Assembly: GCF_001194135.2 (NCBI RefSeq)
Contig: NC_068981.1
Span: 6,490,631 to 6,529,939, forward strand
Direction: 5' to 3'
Length of the DNA: 39,309 bases
Source: Octopus bimaculoides
Taxonomy: Eukaryota
Shown in pieces: positions 2,961 through 32,368 of the stretch. A model generated the notes under the pieces. That model did no database searches. It was not told where the DNA came from and worked only from the letters and a program-made list of their open reading frames with translations. A program made the translations under genes and the position numbers. Within the stretch, counting starts at the first letter, position 1. Every line of letters starts with the position of its first letter.

Positions 2961-3333
2961 GGCCCTCCGTCGGTTACGACGGCGAGGGTTCCAGTTGATC
3001 CGATCAACGGAACAGCTAACTCGTGAAATTAATGTGCAAGTGGCTGAGCACTCCACAGACACGTGTACCTTTCACGTAGTTCTCGGGGATATTCAGCGTG
3101 ACACAGTGTGACAAGGCTGACCCTTTGAATTACAGGCACAACAGAAACAGGAAGAAAGAGTGAGAGAAAGTTGTGATGAAAAAGTACAGCCAGGATTCGC
3201 CATCACCGCCTGCTGGAGCCTCGTGGAGCTTTAGGTATTTTCGCTCAATAAACACTCACAATGCCTGGTCTGGGAATCGAAACCGCGATCCTACGACCGC
3301 GAGTCCGCTGCCCTAACCACTGACCATTGTGTC
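2961..3333 (-). mobile_element. tRNA(Arg)-like SINE, family B, full length
   Basis: Minus-strand head (CAATGGTCAGTGGTTAGGGCAGCGGACTCGCGGTCGTAGGATCGCGGTTTCGATTCCC) has A/B boxes. The 5' ~190 bp are shared with the copy at 23564. Confidence 0.88.
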
Positions 3334-3380
3334 AAGACACACACAGACACACACATATGTGTGTGTGGGTATTTATGTAT

Positions 3381-3825
3381 GTATAAAGTGTGTTAAGAGC
3401 ATTTATAGAACACGTATTCTATAGAAACTCAACAAAGGGAGAAGGTGTTATAAGTTAAAAAAAATTAAATCCATGCATATGATCGTTTTGAACGGTAATA
3501 TTAACATGTAAATAACATGATAAAAAATTAGTTTAATTATAATTATAATTAAATTAATTACATATTACTGTTCTCGTCTGTAACAGTATAACATTCTTCT
3601 GATGCGTTCTTTTTTTTGCACTGACGAGAATAGTAATATGTAATTAATTTAATTATAATTAAATTAATTTTTTACTATGTGATTTACATCTTAATAATAC
3701 CGTTCGAAACGATCGTATGGATGGATTAAATTTTTTAAAACTTATAACACCTTCTCTTCTCCATCTTTGTTTGTTGGGTTTCTCTAGGATAGGTGTTCTA
3801 TAAATGCTCGTAACACACCTTATAC
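3381..3825. repeat. Long inverted repeat (foldback): ~200-bp arms, 44-nt spacer, HHR-like core; probable Penelope-like remnant
   Basis: 3381-3578 is the reverse complement of 3623-3825 (about 90% by eye, two small indels). Confidence 0.92.
3617..3721 (+). ncRNA. Putative minimal type I hammerhead ribozyme
   Basis: TGCA-CTGACGA-GAAT...(70 nt AT-rich)...GTTC-GAAA-CGATCG-TA-TGGA. The core is intact, stem III ACGATCGT is palindromic, and stem I has one mismatch that the opposite arm corrects. Confidence 0.55.
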
Positions 3826-4142
3826 TTGTAACATTTTCATATTCAAAAAAATACTTACAACAGTAAGCTACCAAAGAAATCTGAAGAATCTTTATTAGAA
3901 ATCGACCTTTGGAACTCCACCAAAGTAAAGGATGATATGGAACTCAAACTTTTCTCACATATATGTATGCATGTATAAGGTGAGGGTGATCACGTGCGTA
4001 TGACATCATGATCCTGTTTGAGGCCACGTTTGTGGTCGTGCTCACGTGCATGTTCGTGCCACGGAAACCAGGAAACCGGCCAACGATTTCATGTCTCAAG
4101 AAGGACCTTCATCCTTTTTTTTTGCTATATATCTATCTGCAT

Positions 4143-4532
4143 TCTTTTATCCTTTTATTCTTTTATTTGTTTCAGTCAATTGACTGCGGCCATGCTGGAA
4201 CACCGCCTTTAGTCGAGCAAATCGACCCCAGGACTTATTCTTTTTAAGCCTAGTACTTATTCTATCGGTCTGCTTTGCCGAACCGATTAGTTATGGGGGC
4301 GTAAACACACCAGCATCAGTTGTCAAGCGATGTTGGGGGGGGGTCAAACACAGTCACGCAAATATATACATATATACTACAAGCTTCTTTCAGTTTCCGT
4401 CTACCAAATCCACTCACAAGGCTTTGGTCGGCCCGAGGCTATAGTAGAAGACACTTGCCCAAGGTGCCACGCCGTGGGACTGAACCCGGAACCATGTGGT
4501 TGGTAAGCAAGCTTCTTACCACTCCTGCACCT
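4143..4532 (-). mobile_element. tRNA-derived SINE, family C (CCTTGGGCAAGTGTC CORE-like segment, internal microsatellite)
   Basis: Aligns end to end with six other copies in the window; (TTCTTTTA)-type tail. Confidence 0.9.
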
Positions 4533-5280: not shown

Positions 5281-5658
5281 AGCGTGGTTGTGTGGTAAGA
5301 CGTTTACTTGCAGCTACCTGGTTCCGGGTTCAGTCCCACTGCGTGGGGTCTTGAGTAAACGTCTTCTACTATAGCATCGAGGCGACCAAATTCTTCTGGG
5401 TGGATTTGGTAAACAGAAACTGAAAGAAGTCCGTCTTACATATAGGTACATGTACATCAGTGTGTGTGTGTCTTTGTGTATATGATTGCCCCTGCCAGCG
5501 CTTGATAACTGGTATTGGTATGTTTACGTCCCCGTAACTTAGCGGTTCAACAAAAGAGACCAATCAAGTAAAGTACTGGGTTCGATTCGTACGAGTAAAA
5601 TTCTTCAAAGCGGTGTCTCAGTATGGATGCAGTCTGATAACCTAATCAACTAAAAGAC
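5281..5658 (+). mobile_element. SINE family C, diverged copy
   Basis: GCGTGGTTGTGTGGTAAGA...GGTAAACAGAAACTGAAAGAAG...TTTACGTCCCCGTAACTTAGCGGTTC. Confidence 0.85.
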
Positions 5659-7330: not shown

Positions 7331-7594
7331 CTTTCGTTTTTTTCTTTATTTCTTCCTTCCCCTCTCTCTCTCCTTNNNNNNNNNNNNNNNNNNNNNNNNN
7401 NNNNNNNNNNNNNNNNNNNNNNNNNNNNNNNNNNNNNNNNNNNNNNNNNNNNNNNNNNNNNNNNNNNNNNNNNTAGAAATAAAATAAAATGAAATACGAG
7501 GAAATACAAATGAAAATAAGCATTTCATAATAATTGTTATAACTGGCTAAAGTATTTACCAAAGAGCACCAGGACGCAAATTCATTCTGTCTTA

Positions 7595-9291: not shown

Positions 9292-9447
9292 AACTAGCGA
9301 GAAATATGCGAACACAGAAGTAAAAACCTAAATTAAACCAGAAAAAGTGAAAATTTAGAGATATCGCAGTTGGGATTGAAATAGAAAACACTGGCTTACA
9401 TTAAAATGTAAATGCTTTCCTCGGTTTTCAGAGCCTAACTTTTTCTA

Positions 9448-9840
9448 TTCTTTTATTATTTTATTTGTTTCAGTCTTTTGACTGCGGCTATACTGGAGCA
9501 TCGCCTTTAGTCGAGCAAATCGACCCTAGGACTTATTCTTTGGATGCCTAGTACTTATTCTATCGTTCTCTTTTTGCCGAACCGCTAGATTACGGGGACG
9601 TAAACACACCAGCATCGGTTGTCAAGCGATGTTGGGGGGGGGGCGACAAACACAAACACACACACACACACACATATATATACATATATACGACGGGCTT
9701 CTTTCAGTTTCCGTCTATCAAATCCACTCACAAGGCTTTGGTCGGTCCGAGGCTATAGTAGAAAACACTTACCCAAGGTACCATGCAGTGGGACTGAATT
9801 TGGAACCATGTGGTTGGTAAGCAAGCTCCTTGCCACACAG
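9448..9840 (-). mobile_element. SINE family C
   Basis: Aligns with 4143-4532 and 16645-17049; head truncated by ~10 nt. Confidence 0.9.
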
Positions 9841-10334: not shown

Positions 10335-10495
10335 AGTTATATACGCCGGAAGTTTAATTCAAATATGCATACACATATATATGTGAATAATTTTGACCGA
10401 CTTTGGGCCACCAGTTATATACGCCGGAATTTTCATTCAAATTTGCATACACACATATATACATGTGAATAATTTTGAAGGACTTCAGGCAACCT
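10335..10495. repeat. Two-copy 78-bp tandem duplication
   Basis: AGTTATATACGCCGGAA...GTGAATAATTTTGA starts at 10335 and again at 10413. Confidence 0.85.
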
Positions 10496-11253: not shown

Positions 11254-11913
11254 ACGCAAACGTGGATGTGTGGTAAGATGCTTGTTTTCCAATCACTTGG
11301 CTTCTGTTTCAGTTCCAGTGTGGCACTTTGGACTAATGTCTTCCATTATAGCTTCGGGTCGATCAAAGCCTTGAAAGTGGATTTGGTAGACAGAAACTGA
11401 AACAAGCCCGTCGTATGTATGTATGTATGTATGTATGTATCAGTACATCTCTTGTACTGATAAAGATTTGCTAAAAAATAATGGTTTATCCTTTATGTTG
11501 GAAATCTATATGGTCGTATGCTTTCAAAGAGAGCGGTTTATTTGAAATTAATGTAATGTTATCATTGATCGAAACGGCAGTAATGCACTAATATCTGGAC
11601 ATCCTTGTTACTTATTTGTCTTTTATTAACCCTCGAGCTGTGCGAACTATACTGAACTGGCTTGGAACCTCAACTTAAGTACCTAATTCAACCGAATCTT
11701 AATTATTGTGTGTATGTGTTTGTGTGTGTTTGTGTCTGTGTTTCTCTCTCACCACTGCCTGATAACTGGTGTTGGTGTATTTACGTTCCCGTAATTTAGC
11801 AGTTTGGCAAATAAGCCCAATAGAATAAGTACCAGGCTTACAATAAAGATAAGTAAGCAAAAATTCTCCAAGGCGGTGCCCAAGCATGACCGCAGTCTAA
11901 TGACTGAAATAAA
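11254..11913 (+). mobile_element. SINE family C split by a ~265-bp insertion in its internal microsatellite
   Basis: 5' half 11254-11412, (GTAT)n, unrelated sequence 11441-11705, then 3' half 11706-11913. Confidence 0.8.
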
Positions 11914-12121: not shown

Positions 12122-12358
12122 TATTTATTTCTTTATTGTCCACAGGGGGCTTAACATAGAGGGGACAAACAAGGACAGACAAAGGGATTAAGTCGATTAC
12201 ATAAACCTCAGTGCGTAACTGGTACTTATTTAATCGACCCCGAAAGGATGAAACGCAAAGTTGACCTCGCCGGAATTTGAACTCAGAACGTAACAGCAGA
12301 CGAAATGCCGCTAAGCATTTCGCCCGGCGTGCTAACGTTTCTGCTAGCTCACCGTCCT
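12122..12358 (-). mobile_element. SINE family A, full length
   Basis: Reverse complement aligns to 2013-2243. Probable TSD CAAAAGCAG/CAAAAGTAG at 12113-12121 and 12359-12367. Confidence 0.88.
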
Positions 12359-14225: not shown

Positions 14226-14456
14226 GGGTTGGTTCCATCAATAGTCTAATTATGTAATACAATCACATAATTATTTAATACCAGCACATAATTATAGGAA
14301 TGCAGATCATCTGCTCACATGGTCATAAATATCCATGAATAGGTGGGGAGAGAAGGTGGAAGACAGAAAGAGAGAGTGTGTGTGTGTGTGTGTTAGTAAG
14401 AGGGGGTGAGGCGAAGGAGTGTGATAGGGAAAAGGAAGAAAGACAGAGAGATAGAT

Positions 14457-15941: not shown

Positions 15942-16644
15942 TTAAAAGTTGTTTAGTTGTTATTTCCTTTAATAGCATGCTGCTGAATTTATTTATTTTT
16001 ATAAAACTATTTAGAGACATTATTTTAAATTCTCCCTCCCGAGAGATAGTGGACCATCAGCAAAAAATGCTAATCAACGTCCTAAAATGCAAGTTGCTGT
16101 CTTAAAATGCTAATATCCTCGTGGAGACGAACCGGATTGAAATTCCCGTAGAGATAATTTTTTTTTTTGCCGCCAACAGCCGTTTCCAATGAATATTGAG
16201 ATGCTTTGATTAGGCATGAGAATTCTGTTCCATATTTTAGCGGGTAATGGAAATTGGAAGTTGTGTGCGGTACCCTTTCCCAAAGGTATAAAAGTGTAAA
16301 CGAAATGAAATCATCTCAATTAAGTATCTAATCCGGGTCACAAATTGCTACACACTGGCCACAGTTTCTATGAATATCGATTAGTTTACCGAGAACGGGG
16401 ATTCTGTAATAAAAGTAATTTTTGTCAAGTTTAATGAGTTCATACCAATATATTACTGGTATTTAATTTCCCATTTATTTTATGGGTTAAATTAAACTTT
16501 ATTTTAATTGTGGTTTGCTGCTGTTTTATTAGGTTAGGACAGATCCATCATGAATAAACGCACGAAGCCATGATGGAAGGCATTCTAGCCATGACCATCA
16601 TGCTTTTTCTAAAGCCAGTTATATACTTCAGATGAACATATTAG

Positions 16645-17049
16645 TCTTTTAGTCTTTTACTTGTTTCAATCATTTGACTGTGGCCATGCTGGAGCACCGC
16701 CTTTATTCGAGCAAATCGACCCCAGGACTTATTCTTAGTAAGCCTAGTACTTATTCTATCGGTCTCTTTTGCCGAACCGCTAAGTTACGGGGACGTAAAC
16801 ACACCAGCATCGGTTATCAAGCGATGTTGGGGGGACAGACACAAACACATACACACACATACATATATATATATATAGATATATACGACGGGCTTCTTTC
16901 AGTTTCCGTCTACCAGATCCACTCAGAAGGCTTTGGTCGGCCCGAGGTTATAGTAGAAGACACGTGCCCAAGGTGCCACGCAGTGGGACTGAACCCGGAA
17001 CCATGTGGTTCGTAAGCAAGTTGCTTACCACACAGCCACTCCTACGCCT
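16645..17049 (-). mobile_element. SINE family C, near-intact full-length copy
   Basis: Complete head (TAGGCGTAGGAGTGGCTGTGTGGTAAG on minus), body, internal (TA/CA)n and tail. Confidence 0.93.
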
Positions 17050-17892
17050 ATGTCTAAAATGTCCTTTTTTTATGGAGCTAAGCTGTGTTTGAGGTAAATC
17101 TGATTGCTATTTCTAACAAATCTGGCAACGAAATAGAGGCATGGTCATTGTCTCGTTAATTTGCTTTCGTGTTTGTTTCGATGAGGAAATGTTAGTTTAG
17201 CTGTGTTCCATTGTGTTTCTGATTAGAGAGATGAGAAGGAATCCCCCAACGTCCGAAGGTTCATGACTCTGGTCGTTAGTTGCTGATGGTCAGGGCTACT
17301 TTCGCTGACCAATGACACCGAAGAAGCCGGCTAAATACAATTATGAAACACTAGTTTCCAACAAGCACGGATTACATACATGCTACACTGTGACAGAGAG
17401 AGAGAGAGAGAGAGAAGGAGGGGGTGCACACACACACGCATCACACACACATGCACACACAAATATATAAATATACATAATTGTTTACACACATATATTA
17501 TATGCGCACAAAAACACACGCCTCCAATGAAAGATTTAGTGTCAGTAAGGTTTTCTTTTGGGTTTTTCAGCGCATGCGCGAAGACGAACTGACATAATTT
17601 TCGACCTACAGAAAGCACATTTGTTATAGTGGAAGCGATGTCTCTGTTGTATGCGAGCGGAACGATGATTGCTTCATCTTATTTGATGGCAGCGGCCCCA
17701 TTATTTAATATTTATTCAAACTGCTCAATGTCATACAACTATGCGCTTCTTGTTACTTCAATGGGATAAATGTCTGTAGGTATGAGTGTGTATGTGCGCG
17801 TCATACATATACAAAAGCAGGCATACTAGCACACACACATATAGTTAGACAACTACGTACGTACACACATACATACATACGTATGTAAGCAC

Positions 17893-18452
17893 GTTAACAT
17901 AAAGCTGAAGATCAGTGGAAAAGAGAACACGTAGGCGGAACTACTGAGAAAATTGCAGTTACTCTATCCAGGTTACAAGTTCAGGTTTATTTACACCTGT
18001 AATTATTGAGACTCTGGGATGTGTAATACACTGCCTAAGTAACAATCTTGAGAAATTAGGCTTCTCAAAACCAGAAAGGAGAAAACTAATTCGAAGACAA
18101 CAGATCCAATCCATCACTGGAATTGTGAAAATCTGTAAAACTTTCCAGAAGTTTATCATTTAAATATATATGACCATGTCTAGATATGCAACTATATGCA
18201 TGAGAAGACATGCATAAAGCATACAGATCTGCTCATACATACATACATACATACATACACACATACATATATACATACATACATAAATACATACACACAT
18301 ACATACATACATACATACATAAATACATACATACATACATACAAAAATACCCTTTTGTTTGTGTTGAAATTCCAATGAAAGAACCTTGGATCTAGGTTAC
18401 AAACCGGTTCTTTCTCTATTGGCAAGAAATCTTGAAATAAACTGAATAATGA
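17893..18452 (+). mobile_element. 5'-truncated R4/Dong-like non-LTR retrotransposon (RLE-domain C-terminus plus 3' UTR), pseudogenised
   Basis: Translation VNIKLKISGKENT*AELLRKLQLLYPGYKFRFI/PVIIETLGCVIHCLSNNLEKLGFSKPERRKLIRRQQIQSITGIVKICKTFQKFII* (stop 18161-18163) matches the R4-clade C-terminal pattern (K..Y..L...PI.IG.LG...LQ...L.GT..I). One stop and one frameshift. The 3' boundary is uncertain. Confidence 0.8.
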
Positions 18453-18724: not shown

Positions 18725-19230
18725 TATAGAAAACAAGATGTCTATGTGGCAAATGTGCAGGAACAATAAGCAGTAAAAATTGGAAATTGGGCCTCTCCCT
18801 CAAAGTGAAACGTAGATTGCATTCGAATGGCAATCCTCCATAGTAGTGAAACGTGTGCCCTGAATGCAGAGGACATGTGAGGACTGGAGAGGAATGAAGC
18901 AAGTATTCTCCAGTGGATGTGCAACATCAGTGTGCATATATGACAAAGTGCAAAATTGCTGGGCATAAGAGGAATTAGATGGAGCTTGTAAGAGAGAAGA
19001 CTACAATGGTTTGGTCAGGTGTTGCATATGAATGAAGACAGGTGTGTAAAGAAGTGCAAATGGCTTAAAGTGGATGTGACTTCTGGAAGAGGGAGACCCA
19101 GTTGGACATGTGATAAGATACTGAGGGCTGATCTCAACATGTTGGGCTCATGGAGGAGACGACAATGGACTAAGACTTCTGGCAATATGAGATTCTTTAG
19201 AAAACCCACTCATCTCAGCGAGGGCGAGTG
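18725..19230 (+). mobile_element. RTE-clade LINE ORF 3' fragment, decayed
   Basis: Frameshifted translation GLSLKVKRRL...SETCALNAEDM*GLERNEASILQWMC...LGIRGIR...RRLQWFGQVLHMNEDRCVKKC...GRGRP matches the RTE C-terminal 'RLRWFGHV.R...GRPR' signature. Confidence 0.85.
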
Positions 19231-19576
19231 TTCTTGAAGCAAGGGCGAGTGTTATTGAACATTAATTCACCCCCACCACACTAATGAACAAAAGTACAAC
19301 TCTTCATGCACTATGCTTGTCTCTCCTGTCTCACTCCAGCAGCCCAACACCATTCTATCATATCTCTCTTGTCCTTGCTCAACCAACTGAATCATTACAA
19401 TACTGTGGCTCCCCCTACATACCTGCATTTCATCACTCACTGCATTCCCCTCTCCCTCCTCACTCTCCTTTTGCACACTCGTGAACTTCCTGCTCAGGCA
19501 CCCTGTCCAATCGTCTACCACTCCACTTACATTCATCTTCTTGTACCTTGAGGGCACACCTTGGCACATCGTCACC

Positions 19577-23084: not shown

Positions 23085-23563
23085 ATATATATATATATAT
23101 ATATANNNNNNNNNNNNNNNNNNNNNNNNNNNATACTGGAAGGTTTGGAGGTGATGTACAGGAATTATATATTAGAAAAAATAATAATCAGGTACTCAGA
23201 TGTCTGGCTGGTTGTATATTTACAATGTTTTAACGTTGTTTACCTTGTTGCTGACGTCTTTTGGACATTCGAAATGTTAACACGATGAGGTAAATTCGGT
23301 TATGTTAGAATTTCCTTCTTTTTTTATGGATACTCCGTTTAAGAGAACCCAAGTAAGGCTCTCACTGATCAAAGATCTGGAAATCTAGGTCGCGTTTCAA
23401 ACGGTATTTTTAAGTGGAATCACATATATCAGCAAGCATCTAACAACATCCAGCTCACCCTTAATTTTCTCTTAAACGAACCAGAATATAATATGCCAGA
23501 AACGTACCAATAATTTTTACTCTGTATGCGGACATGAATAATATTTACGTATAGAACACTCGT

Positions 23564-23838
23564 GGAGGCGCAATGGCCCAGTAGTTAGGGTAGCGGACTC
23601 GCGGTCGGAGGATCGCGGTTTCGATTCCCAGACCGGGCGTTGTGTGTGTTTATTGAGCGAAAACACCTAAAAGCTCCACGAGGCGCCGGCAGGGGTGGTG
23701 GCGACCCTTGTTGTACTCTTTCATTCCAACTTTCTCTCACTCTTTTTTCCTGGCGGGGGTACACATATACTATAGAAACCGGGAAACCAGGCCCATGAGC
23801 CTGGCTAGGCTTTAAAAAGGGAGCGTAAATAAATAAAT
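23564..23838 (+). mobile_element. SINE family B 5' part with an alternative 3' tail
   Basis: 23564-~23750 aligns with the 2961-3333 copy, then diverges into GAAACCGGGAAACCAGGCCCATGAGCCTGGCTAGGCTTTAAAAAGGG-(AAAT)n. Confidence 0.85.
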
Positions 23839-24487: not shown

Positions 24488-24707
24488 AAGGTAGCGAGCT
24501 GACAGAAACGTTAGCACGCTGGACGAATTGCTTAACGGTATTTCGTCCGTTTTTATGTTCTGAGTTCAAATTCTGTCGAAGTCATCTTTGCCTTTCATCC
24601 TTCCGGGGTCGATAAATTATTTACCAGTTGCGTACTGGGATCGATCTAATCGACTGACTCCCCACCACCTCAAAACTTCAGGCCTTGTGTCTAGAGTAGA
24701 AAAGAAA
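24488..24707 (+). mobile_element. SINE family A variant with 12-bp TSD
   Basis: Family A head and central domain; AGAATATGTGCA repeated at 24476-24487 and 24708-24719. Confidence 0.88.
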
Positions 24708-25635
24708 AGAATATGTGCAGAATCAATGAATGTCTTGGTAGCTTCCAAGTATTTAGTGTGAGTGTCATGAAAATAAGGGGTTTATTGTGTATGTTACTTT
24801 TGCTACAGAAATGATCAAACCAAGAGAAGGATATCTCTACAAAGATAATCGACTGCTTTATAGTTGATTATCTTTATATAAGACATGTAGTCTTAATATC
24901 GAACGTCCTGTACACACAGTAACCCTTTTAAGAATTGTAAGGGTTTATTGAAGTATAATCGATCGCTATATAGCTAGTATAACGCTGTTGAGTGTGTAGT
25001 TGAATTGAACGGGTCATGTGACTACGTAGAGTCGCTTTACCAGCGATGATGTTTACAAAGAAATACGAATTTTCTTTTGTTATTGTGTCGTGTACAATGG
25101 AGGGACGGGGTGCAGATTCTAGAATTCTTCTCTTTCAATCTAAAAGTAACAACTTGAACTCTTTAAGAATAAAATTTACCCTGAAATAATGCGATCTCAA
25201 TCAACAGAGGTAAAAATGAGATGATCCGGCAATTGTAAAAATGGGAGGTAAATGAGTTATAAAGATAGGAGGCAATTTGGAGGTGGGTTAAATTCAAATT
25301 AGATATCTTCGAAGGAGAATTGGGACCCTGAATGACTATCAAAACTGGAAGCATACTGAATATTTGTGTGTCCTGGTCTCAGACTCCATCCATGATCCTC
25401 TCATCTGACAAACATTTCACAAGGAAAGAAAATTAGATATTAGTGGAAGATGACAAGAAATTATAATTTCGTTTGGAAAACTTTGTTTTTCTGAAAAAGA
25501 AGCTGAGGAGACATTTTGGTTTTCCAGTTAATTATCATAATTATAAAACATCAGAAATTGGTAGGAATTAATGTTCACGGGAGATCAGCGCTAAATAGCA
25601 GGCATAACAAATTTGCAAGAAAAATTCCCCAAAAT

Positions 25636-28774: not shown

Positions 28775-29193
28775 AATACTTACACCTCCCACACACATAC
28801 CTTAATATAATGAGAGAAAAAAGAACATGGGCTGGAATTCATTACTTCTTTATTTCACCTGTTACACGTATTGCAGTGTTCGGTATCTCATGTTACATTT
28901 TTGGTGCAATCCGTGCATGCATCTCATAAGGGCAGCATGCATAAGCTGGCACATCTTTAGACTGATAAATGAGAAATACAAATATCACACACACATACAC
29001 ACGTACACTCGCGCGCGCGCGCACACACACACACACACCGACATTTTTGAACAATTAGCGTCGACAAAATTTCATTTAGATGATGAGGTTATAGTGATAG
29101 CCACTTGGATAATGTGCCACGCAATGGATTCGATCCCGCAATCTCATTGTTACGAAATGAAATTCTTAGCCAAATAACTATACGTAAGCCTAT

Positions 29194-29373
29194 ATTCTTT
29201 TATTCTTTTATATGTTTCAGTCATTTGACTGCGACCATACTGAACTGACCCCAAGACTTATTTTTTCTGAGCCTATCGGTCTCTTTTGCTGAACCGCTAA
29301 GTTACGGGGACGAAAACACACCAACATTGGTTGTCAAGCGATGGGGGGGGGCGACAAACACAGACACACAAAT

Positions 29374-29427
<54 letters not shown>

Positions 29428-29610
29428 GCACACACACATACGACGGGATTCTTTCAGTTTCCGTCTACCAAACCCATTAACAAGGCTTTGGTCAACTCGA
29501 GGTTATAGTAGATAGCACTTGCTCGAGTTTTTTTTTTTTTTACGCAGTAGGACTGAACCCAGAACCATGTGGTTGGGAAGCAGGCCTTTTACCACAACCA
29601 CTCTTGCCTA
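29194..29610 (-). mobile_element. SINE family C with small internal deletions and an expanded (CA)n
   Basis: Aligns to 16645-17049. Confidence 0.88.
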
Positions 29611-30489: not shown

Positions 30490-30535
30490 TTTACACTGAT
30501 GAAATCTTTCATATTTGATTGAAAGCTTTTGTAAA
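30490..30535 (+). ncRNA. Putative minimal type I hammerhead ribozyme
   Basis: TTTACA-CTGATGA-AATC-tttcatattt-GATT-GAAA-GC-TT-(T)-TGTAAA: 6-bp stem I, 4-bp stem II, palindromic AGCT stem III, and one extra T. Confidence 0.55.
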
Positions 30536-30798
30536 ATTTTCATGAAAAAATCTGCTGAAAAAATATTATTTTTTCTAGGAACCCCTGTTACATTATAGAT
30601 ATTTATGTAAAAATATTTTCCTCGGATATGGGAGAATAACTCAGAGCTTTGGCTCTGATCCTCGTGACCTCTTTTAACTATAATTCCAATCCAAAACCGT
30701 TCGTAAAACTCTCATTCTAATTAGAAAATTAATATTTTTAAATATCACAACGTTAGATATTCAGCCTCAGTAATTTGGAGTAAAGATTGTTTGCCAAC

Positions 30799-31612: not shown

Positions 31613-31771
31613 GAAATCACTAGGTGAAATTCCTCGAAATCTCCAATAGAATCTTAGTAATATTTCAGTAAAGATTATGAAGTGTTCTGAAACGGATTAA
31701 AACTGATTCTCAACCGGGCTCCATATAAGATTTGGACGTTAAAATTTATCTGCAATACATTGTTTATACTA

Positions 31772-32073
31772 CGCGCATGCGTGGCTGTGTGGTAAGAAGC
31801 TTGCTTCTCAACTTCATGGTTCAGAGTTCAGTCCTACTGCGTGGCACCTTGGGCAAGTGTCTTCTACTATAACCTCGGGCCGACCAAAGCCTTGTGGGTG
31901 GATTCGGTAGACGGAAACTGAAAGAAGCCCCTCATATATATATATATATATATAAAATATGTAGTTTTAGGGAAAATAACCAATTATCAAGAACTCATCG
32001 ATGAAAATCCACTATCACATATAGAAAAATTAATAATTAAAAGCACAATAAATGAGTATAATATAAAGTAAAG

Positions 32074-32113
<40 letters not shown>

Positions 32114-32368
32114 TATATGTATGTGTATGTGTGTATGTATGCATATATTTATGTGTGTGTGTGTCTTTGTTTCTGTGTTTGTCCCACTCACCATCACTTG
32201 ACAACCTATGCTAGTGTGTTTACGTCCCCGTAACCTAGCCGTTCGGCAAAACATACCGATAAAATAAGTATCAGGCTTACAAAAAATAAGTGCTGGGGTC
32301 GATTTCTTCGACTAAAAAGGCTGTGCTCCAGCATGGCCGCAGTCAAATGAATGAAACAAGTAAAAGAA
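31772..32368 (+). mobile_element. SINE family C split by a ~120-bp insertion in its internal (TA)n
   Basis: 5' half 31772-31932, (TA)n, unrelated 31955-32075, (TA)n/(TG)n, then 3' half to 32368. Confidence 0.85.

Follow-up and report, generated by a model that had tools for sequence, protein, structure and literature searches.

A 445-bp foldback with a hammerhead-like motif in Octopus bimaculoides, possibly the decayed relic of a Penelope-like element

The stretch of DNA analyzed in this study (the window) comprises 39,309 nucleotides of the Octopus bimaculoides contig NC_068981.1 (assembly GCF_001194135.2, positions 6,490,631 to 6,529,939 of the forward strand), and all coordinates below are counted from its first nucleotide. 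The window is non-coding and dense in microsatellites (75 tandem-repeat rows), and has no convincing long reading frame. It contains ten assembly gaps totalling 4438 N, and the gap nearest to the element described here starts at 7376. This element, at 3381–3825, is a 445-bp foldback, in which two arms of about 200 bp, about 85–90% alike, flank a 38-bp spacer. The foldback is a single, old, non-coding mobile-element relic consisting of two head-to-head copies of a ~200-bp AT-rich unit, and we tentatively trace its hammerhead-like motif to a Penelope-like element (PLE). Its parts are as follows.

3381–3581, minus strand: left arm, a reversed copy of the ~200-bp unit with a damaged hammerhead-like motif
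3582–3619, no strand assigned: central spacer, 38 bp, unique, with no counterpart in the other arm
3617–3620, plus strand: the last bases of the spacer and position 3620, the proposed 5′ strand of helix I
3620–3825, plus strand: right arm, the other copy of the ~200-bp unit, with an intact hammerhead-like motif
3382–3385, no strand assigned: TATA at the left end
3821–3824, no strand assigned: TATA at the right end

Three pairs of inverted-repeat segments tile 3381–3581 against 3620–3825, namely 3439–3545/3650–3756 (107 nt, 89% identity), 3381–3445/3761–3825 (65 nt, 85% identity), and 3540–3581/3620–3661 (42 nt, 95% identity), with arm identity peaking at the center of the foldback and lowest at its tips. 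In the arm-to-arm alignment, 176 of 206 columns were identical with gaps counted, corresponding to about 90% by substitutions alone, and the arms were separated by two indels of 11 and 6 nt. BLAST alignment of the foldback with its own reverse complement gave 79% identity over 467 columns, gaps included. The inverted repeats and the arm alignment agree on the 445-bp foldback with ~200-bp arms, about 90% complementary, that the initial annotation had reported. The G+C content of the foldback is 26%, compared to 37% for the window, and its G+C-rich islands are precisely the hammerhead core and helix III. The two TATA tetranucleotides provide the sole candidate target-site duplication (TA or TATA), which is uninformative because it is palindromic and indistinguishable from the inverted repeat. 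Direct repeats of 3 bp, 4 bp (TTAA), or 8 bp were not present at the foldback ends.

In the right arm, the initial annotation had recognized a hammerhead ribozyme in the string TGCA-CTGACGA-GAAT-(70 nt)-GTTC-GAAA-CGATCG-TA^TGGA, where ^ marks the predicted cut, and all its coordinates match the sequence. The motif is made up of the following elements, all on the plus strand.

3617–3620: TGCA, proposed as the 5′ strand of helix I; of its bases, only 3620 belongs to the inverted repeat
3621–3627: CTGACGA, matching hammerhead core positions C3 to A9
3628–3631: GAAT, 5′ strand of the proposed 4-bp helix II, with G10.1 at 3628; 3630–3631 are also claimed by the inner hairpin
3632–3701: 70-nt insert of helix II
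3630–3678: inner AT-rich hairpin, in which ATAGTAA/TTACTAT closes a 28-nt palindrome; competes with helix II
3630–3636 and 3672–3678: ATAGTAA and TTACTAT, respectively
3642–3669: 28-nt AT palindrome
3702–3705: GTTC, 3′ strand of the proposed helix II, with C11.1 at 3705
3706–3709: GAAA, matching G12, A13, A14, and A15.1
3709–3716: ACGATCGT, perfect 8-nt palindrome, proposed helix III, unable to close as a hairpin
3710–3715: CGATCG, followed by T at 3716
3717–3721: A17 at 3717, the last base before the predicted cut, and TGGA, which would form the 3′ strand of helix I

Every hammerhead core base is present in the right arm (3621–3627, 3706–3709, and 3716–3717), together with the G10.1–C11.1 pair, a GUA cleavage triplet, and the palindrome ACGATCGT at helix III; this palindrome is the self-complementary helix III that had been proposed. 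Helix I is defective: only A3620–U3718 and C3619–G3719 pair, and G3618 faces G3720 in a mismatch. A shorter helix II formed through another GAAA register was ruled out, as no other GAAA occurs within 3628–3705. On the minus strand of the left arm, the damaged cores described previously were found together with the helix strands, reading CAGACGA (3580–3574), GAAC (3573–3570), GTTC (3493–3490), AAAA (3489–3486), CGATCA (3485–3480), TA (3479–3478), and TGCA (3477–3474). This arm has no full core, with U4 replaced by A and G12 by A, and one helix-III base is also lost. In both arms, the motif lies on the outward-reading strand, and about 108 nt separate the predicted cleavage site from the outer end.

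The proposal that the two arms jointly complete a hammerhead was only partly borne out. The arms differ at five hammerhead positions (3622, 3631, 3706, 3715, and 3720). At 3622, 3706, and 3715, the functional base is that of the right arm, and either base pairs at 3631, leaving 3720 (G to C) as the only position that the left arm truly repairs. The 5′ strand of helix I sits in the unique spacer; in place of the right-arm TGCA, the left arm shows GTTA. Introducing the left-arm bases 3631C and 3720C into the right arm raised the pair probability of helix I from ~0 to 0.82–0.92 and that of helix II from ~0 to 0.40, and the hammerhead fold then cost +4.5 instead of +13.0 kcal/mol. The two exchanges do improve the stems, but the joint hammerhead is a selection of the best base from two copies with one true repair, and the claim of a complete ribozyme is overstated. 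Two copies alone do not fix the ancestral base at the sites that differ. Compensatory changes in the inner hairpin between the arms were considered and rejected, since by eye in the alignment the left arm merely loses two pairs.

Structure prediction for 3606–3745 gave −6.0 kcal/mol for the hammerhead-compatible fold versus −19.6 kcal/mol for the minimum free energy (MFE) fold; the right arm as it stands has its hammerhead fold 13 kcal/mol above its best fold. In 3610–3730, the four helix-II pairs had a probability of 0.0000 and the helix-I pairs of at most 0.0002, and the inner hairpin of ATAGTAA/TTACTAT around the 28-nt palindrome reached 0.73–0.99. Helix II (GAAT, 3628–3631) and the ATAGTAA strand (3630–3636) are mutually exclusive because both need 3630–3631. 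The AT-rich arms, which had been interpreted as an extension of helix II, compete with it instead. A transcript spanning both arms is predicted to form a near-continuous hairpin of about 200 bp (−224 kcal/mol for the plus strand and −202 kcal/mol for the minus strand). In the predicted homodimer, the palindrome ACGAUCGU pairs intermolecularly, and GUUCG pairs with UGGAUGG of the partner, so that helix II is not formed. The second motif of a two-arm transcript is antisense and unable to act as the tandem partner on which minimal hammerheads depend. No tandem array was detected. These predictions suggest that the motif is dead at this locus, with no likely present ribozyme function, because helix I is mismatched and helix II consists of four weak pairs that close a 70-nt insert and are out-competed by the inner hairpin, and also because dimer cleavage would find no tandem partner and the two-arm transcript would be a ~200-bp hairpin.

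The rarity of the motif was estimated with two descriptors. The loose descriptor consisted of CTGANGA, a helix II of at least 4 bp with at most 120 nt inside, GAAA, a palindromic or short-hairpin helix III, and UH. The strict descriptor consisted of CTGANGAG...CGAAA, a helix II of at least 4 bp, a perfect Watson–Crick palindromic helix III, and UH, and includes G10.1–C11.1. The loose descriptor is expected 0.17 times per dinucleotide-shuffled window, and a look-alike of that quality is cheap; no match to it was found in 40.7 kb of Octopus vulgaris. For the strict descriptor, the foldback was the only match in the window, with 0.0005 expected per shuffled window. Among 4000 shuffled windows, there were 0–2 motif matches and none with a palindrome as long as that observed. 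Base-frequency arithmetic gave about 1e-4 per window, equivalent to a few chance cases per octopus-sized genome, and arithmetic on the foldback's own base composition gave well below 1e-5 per element. The hammerhead-like motif is too complete to dismiss lightly and rarer than chance easily explains.

The loose descriptor matched two further sites in the window, at 17905 and 30496, making three in total versus 0.17 expected from the shuffles. The look-alike at 30490–30562 (plus strand) reads TTTACA-CTGATGA-AATC-(10 nt)-GATT-GAAA-GCTT-T^TGTAAA and has a perfect 6-bp helix I, but its first helix-II pair is A10.1–U11.1. It had many weak Rfam matches to C/D-box small nucleolar RNAs, led by snoR128, whose 21 bits fall short of the threshold of 40. 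The stretch contains UGAUGA and CUGA boxes as well as a terminal stem of UUU/AAA. It is closer to a C/D-box RNA than to a hammerhead, and repeat copies of it were not found. The look-alike at 17905–17962 (plus strand) has CTGAAGA, a 7-bp helix II (TCAGTGG/CTACTGA, U10.1–A11.1) with a 22-nt loop, GAAA, the near-palindrome ATTGCAGT, TA, and five of six helix-I pairs, and lies in no repeat present in the sample.

The foldback is bordered on its left side by two features, and on its right side by about 320 bp of unique DNA followed by an interspersed repeat of about 400 bp.

3336–3380, no strand assigned: (CA)n/(TG)n and (TGTA)n microsatellite, directly adjoining the left end of the foldback
3143–3330, minus strand: copy of a tRNA-derived short interspersed element (SINE), left of the microsatellite

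Searches of several collections with parts of the foldback yielded little. The sole marginal match to the unit in the window was at 23393–23426 (minus strand), where 36 nt are 86% identical to 3676–3711, including CCGTTtGAAACG. With p of about 0.02 against shuffles, an nhmmer E-value of 0.13, no upstream CTGANGA, no flanking similarity, and no collinearity with anything else, this match was treated as chance rather than as a second copy. Exact scans of viral contigs with a core 20-mer and exact-pattern scans of metagenome and prokaryote-genome collections gave no match, and a 17-mer from the foldback ends hit seven unrelated phage contigs. An exact 21-mer of a foldback end, TTAAGAGCATTTATAGAACAC, was present in the IMG/VR contigs L001 (5384–5404), L002 (8525–8545), and L007 (1722–1742), which are phage-type contigs, at least two of them mutually related; this match was regarded as a coincidence because there is no similarity beyond the 21-mer. 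The 55-aa translation of the right arm had no match in a word-indexed protein search and matched one unrelated repeat protein (P0004) in a full HMMER scan. A protein search for an orthologous octopus locus with the concatenated open reading frames (ORFs) of the first 13.8 kb gave no match, and neither did a search of the full-text literature with six sequence strings of the foldback. No ORF of at least 90 aa was found between 1529 and 7082.

The surroundings are rich in repeats that also occur at two chromosome loci of O. vulgaris, L008 and L009. The ~400-bp repeat and the tRNA-derived SINE are common to these loci and the window, with 80–91% identity, and the loci are not collinear with the window. 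The SINE family, which has a B-box-like GGTTTCGATTCC, is represented at 3143–3330 (minus strand) and 23564–23752 (plus strand) of the window, at 14357–14543 of L008, and at 4050–4257 of L009, with copies 83–88% identical, and no tRNA was called in it by ARAGORN. The ~400-bp repeat occurs about once per 6 kb (4152–4522, 9439–9840, 16641–17051, 29193–29596, 31770–32367, 5284–5580, and 11262–11912), with several more copies in L008 and L009. An ORF of this repeat matched two entries named "Hypothetical predicted protein [Octopus vulgaris]" (P0001 and P0002) at 86% and 57% identity, and L008 and L009 were reached through these proteins. Since chance ORFs of the repeat are annotated in O. vulgaris, these gene models are probably repeat-derived artefacts. 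The protein matches and the common repeats point to Octopus and away from a shrimp genome. A further short interspersed repeat occurs at 2013–2180, 12189–12354, and 24558–24712 of the window and at 2854–2937 and 18073–18233 of L008, with 78–89% identity between the window and O. vulgaris. At 10335–10485, a 78-bp unit is repeated 1.9 times (87% matches), adjoining a 40-bp sub-period. An 81-aa open stretch at 18992–19234 on the plus strand (ERRLQWFGQVLHMNED...GRGRPSWTCDKILRADL...) had no Pfam match. It may resemble the C-terminal tail of the reverse-transcriptase proteins of non-long-terminal-repeat (non-LTR) retrotransposons, the long interspersed elements.

Our tentative preference, placed narrowly ahead of the explanation by a foldback DNA transposon weighed below, is that the foldback is the dead relic of a PLE-type hammerhead. 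According to this proposal, a PLE insertion would have left a 5′-truncated copy beside an inverted, 5′-truncated partner. The right copy would be 3582–3825 and the left copy 3381–3581, each with its 3′ end outward, and a minimal type-I hammerhead near the PLE 3′ end would have kept its core and palindromic helix III in the right arm. The left arm would since have lost U4, G12, and one helix-III base. The outward motifs in both arms fit inverted 5′-truncated PLE copies with hammerheads near the PLE 3′ ends (PMC8557442) as well as dual minimal hammerhead ribozymes on opposite strands (PMC4209133), and the microsatellite adjoining the left end fits the insertion bias of PLEs (PMC8557442). From these features, we infer a retroelement origin, and that the ancestral unit may at some time have cleaved itself. 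To the PLE-derived foldback put forward in the initial annotation, the rare motif and the outward geometry, which agrees with published reports (PMC8557442 and PMC4209133), lend support. The lack of an Rfam match and of a PLE coding remnant in the ten ORF segments, and two missing hallmarks, do not.

Several results weigh against this preferred reading. Searches with the Rfam hammerhead models (Hammerhead_1, _3, _II, HH9, and HH10) over 39 kb, 601 nt, and 141 nt gave no match at the gathering threshold or at E ≤ 10, a result that is not decisive because the 70-nt insert may defeat the models. The arms differ at 5 of the 32 hammerhead positions and at 25 of the other 174 positions (Fisher p = 0.79), so the hammerhead positions have diverged like the rest of the arm, indicating that the motif has not been protected since the duplication. 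The strict-descriptor figures are optimistic because the criteria were fixed after the match was seen, and the two extra loose matches suggest that real octopus DNA may yield look-alikes more often than shuffled sequence. BLASTN and nhmmer searches with the element and a two-arm profile found no second copy of the unit in the window or in the two O. vulgaris loci (40.7 kb, far too small to exclude a family), and with no second copy there is neither covariation nor a link to a PLE. No Pfam domain, whether reverse transcriptase, GIY-YIG nuclease, or other, was found in ten ORF segments sampled across the window; a heavily 5′-truncated PLE remnant would lack the reverse transcriptase and GIY-YIG frame anyway. 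Minimal hammerhead ribozymes of PLEs have a short helix I, a helix II of 6–8 bp with a small loop, and one additional base after position 9 (PMC4209133). Unlike them, the foldback has a helix II of four weak pairs closing a 70-nt structured insert and no extra base between 9 and 10.1, and shows two of the four hallmarks (G10.1–C11.1 and the palindrome). A miniature inverted-repeat transposable element (MITE) would match the TA/TATA ends, the size, the AT-rich composition, and the inversion of the arms over their full length equally well. None of the independent tests (covariance models, folding, differential conservation, coding remnants, and family copies) favored the ribozyme reading.

The chief competitor, which we also regard as a serious possibility, is that the foldback is an ordinary MITE-like relic of a foldback DNA transposon or a local inverted duplication, and that the hammerhead-like string is coincidental. 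Any past movement would then have been by cut-and-paste via terminal inverted repeats, and no ribozyme would ever have been encoded. Inverted arms spanning all 445 bp, the non-coding sequence with 26% G+C, TA/TATA at both ends as a possible Tc1/mariner-type duplication, and the dominance of DNA transposons (Tc/Mar and hAT) among cephalopod repeats (PMC6962438) argue for this explanation. Also in its favor are the lack of Rfam hammerhead matches in the foldback, the conflict between helix II and the inner hairpin, the lack of preferential conservation of hammerhead positions between the arms, the location of the helix-I 5′ strand outside the repeat, and the two loose look-alikes in the window, one of them closer to a C/D-box RNA. 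Against it stand the rarity of the motif (at most 0.0005 in a shuffled window, and far less than 1e-5 per element), the palindromic and hence uninformative candidate duplication, and the failure to find, in the window or 40.7 kb of O. vulgaris, a second copy that would prove a transposon family. In addition, identity of 95% at the center versus 85% at the tips is not the pattern expected of conserved transposase-binding ends. Outside these two readings there remains only a small share of the probability, divided among the minor rivals and readings not listed here.

An unlikely variant of the PLE hypothesis is a short, non-autonomous, PLE-derived family, undescribed in cephalopods, whose hammerhead would contain a ~70-nt structured helix-II insert (a three-way junction) and would cleave as a dimer via an 8-bp palindromic helix III. 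Rfam models and standard descriptors would miss an architecture with such a long helix-II insert. That the motif is a currently active, unusual hammerhead with the same kind of insert, cleaving in trans as a dimer through the 8-bp palindrome, is highly improbable. The right-arm core is intact, ACGAUCGU pairs intermolecularly in the predicted dimer, and very short helices II are tolerated by natural hammerheads (PMC3088659), but G3720 mismatches in helix I, the helix-I and helix-II pair probabilities are ~0, and the fold costs +13 kcal/mol. Moreover, the predicted dimer pairs GUUCG with UGGAUGG and forms no helix II, the antisense arm, located 40 nt upstream, would lock the motif into a hairpin of −224 kcal/mol, and the twin copy has decayed with no sign of selection. 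It is improbable, to a slightly lesser degree, that the locus is a source of long hairpin RNA, yielding small interfering RNAs or representing a young microRNA-like gene, for which the hammerhead resemblance would be irrelevant. Either strand is predicted to fold into the near-continuous ~200-bp hairpin (−224 and −202 kcal/mol), and the weak Rfam matches were only to generic hairpin-type microRNA models, e.g., MIR1435 (20.9 bits versus a threshold of 94); every foldback transposon predicts the same, and the scores are far below threshold. Least probable of all is an assembly artefact, that is, a chimeric palindrome from library construction or scaffolding. The assembly of the window does have gaps, in the style of short-read data, with 4438 N in 10 runs, but the arms differ by about 10% substitutions and the 11-nt and 6-nt indels, the 38-bp spacer is unique, and no gap lies near the foldback, the nearest starting at 7376. 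Artefactual palindromes have identical arms.

If the foldback is a true hammerhead relic, the hammerhead-bearing retroelements of cephalopods extend to variants whose helix-II insert is very long and to which current descriptors and covariance models are blind, and hammerhead counts in cephalopod genomes would be underestimates. If the resemblance is a coincidence, the case is a caution: an unremarkable AT-rich foldback can harbor a near-perfect core and a palindromic helix III, and little is proved by a "repaired consensus" of two copies. On either reading, the foldback is an inactive repeat.

Among known systems, the metazoan non-LTR retrozymes (Cervera & de la Pena 2020, PMC7229834) resemble the foldback in unit size (about 170–400 nt), low G+C content, a type-I hammerhead, and a weak helix III. 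They are direct tandem repeats giving circular RNAs, whereas the foldback is a single inverted pair, and its motif has no loop 1/loop 2 contacts; a retrozyme was ruled out because the two units are inverted and not in tandem. MITEs and foldback DNA transposons with a TA duplication (Stowaway or Tc1/mariner-derived) share with the foldback a length of a few hundred bp, AT-richness, non-coding sequence, full-length inverted arms, and TA at the ends, and cephalopod repeats are dominated by DNA transposons of the Tc/Mar and hAT types (PMC6962438). The foldback differs from MITEs in that its ends are least conserved, no second copy was found, and its palindromic duplication is unverifiable. PLEs occur in Octopus species, and in some Naiad-type PLEs the hammerhead core cannot be fitted to any stem descriptor, with half-cores 35–50 nt apart among these cases; cephalopod Naiads were reported without canonical hammerheads (PMC8557442). 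The foldback resembles these Naiad cores (HHR_core and HHR_half_core, where HHR stands for hammerhead ribozyme) in that the core halves are unusually far apart, although the distance is 78 nt in the foldback versus 35–50 nt. Natural hammerheads tolerate a very short helix II (PMC3088659).

The minimal hammerhead ribozymes of PLEs (Cervera & de la Pena 2014, PMC4209133) have a canonical core, a conserved G10.1–C11.1 pair, and palindromic 15.2–16.2 and loop 3, show low activity, and are active only as dimers. They are mostly scattered single motifs and are sometimes found as pairs on opposite strands 100–700 bp apart (PMC4209133). The foldback shares with them the CUGANGA...GAAA core, G10.1–C11.1, a very short palindromic helix III implying dimer cleavage, and a short helix I, as well as the scattered single or opposite-strand paired occurrence and a probably low intrinsic activity. 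PLE insertions are often 5′-truncated with an adjacent inverted, 5′-truncated copy, carry their hammerheads near the 3′ end, and show an insertion bias to microsatellites (Craig et al. 2021, PMC8557442). With its head-to-head unequal arms, outward 3′ ends, and flanking microsatellite, the foldback resembles this insertion architecture.

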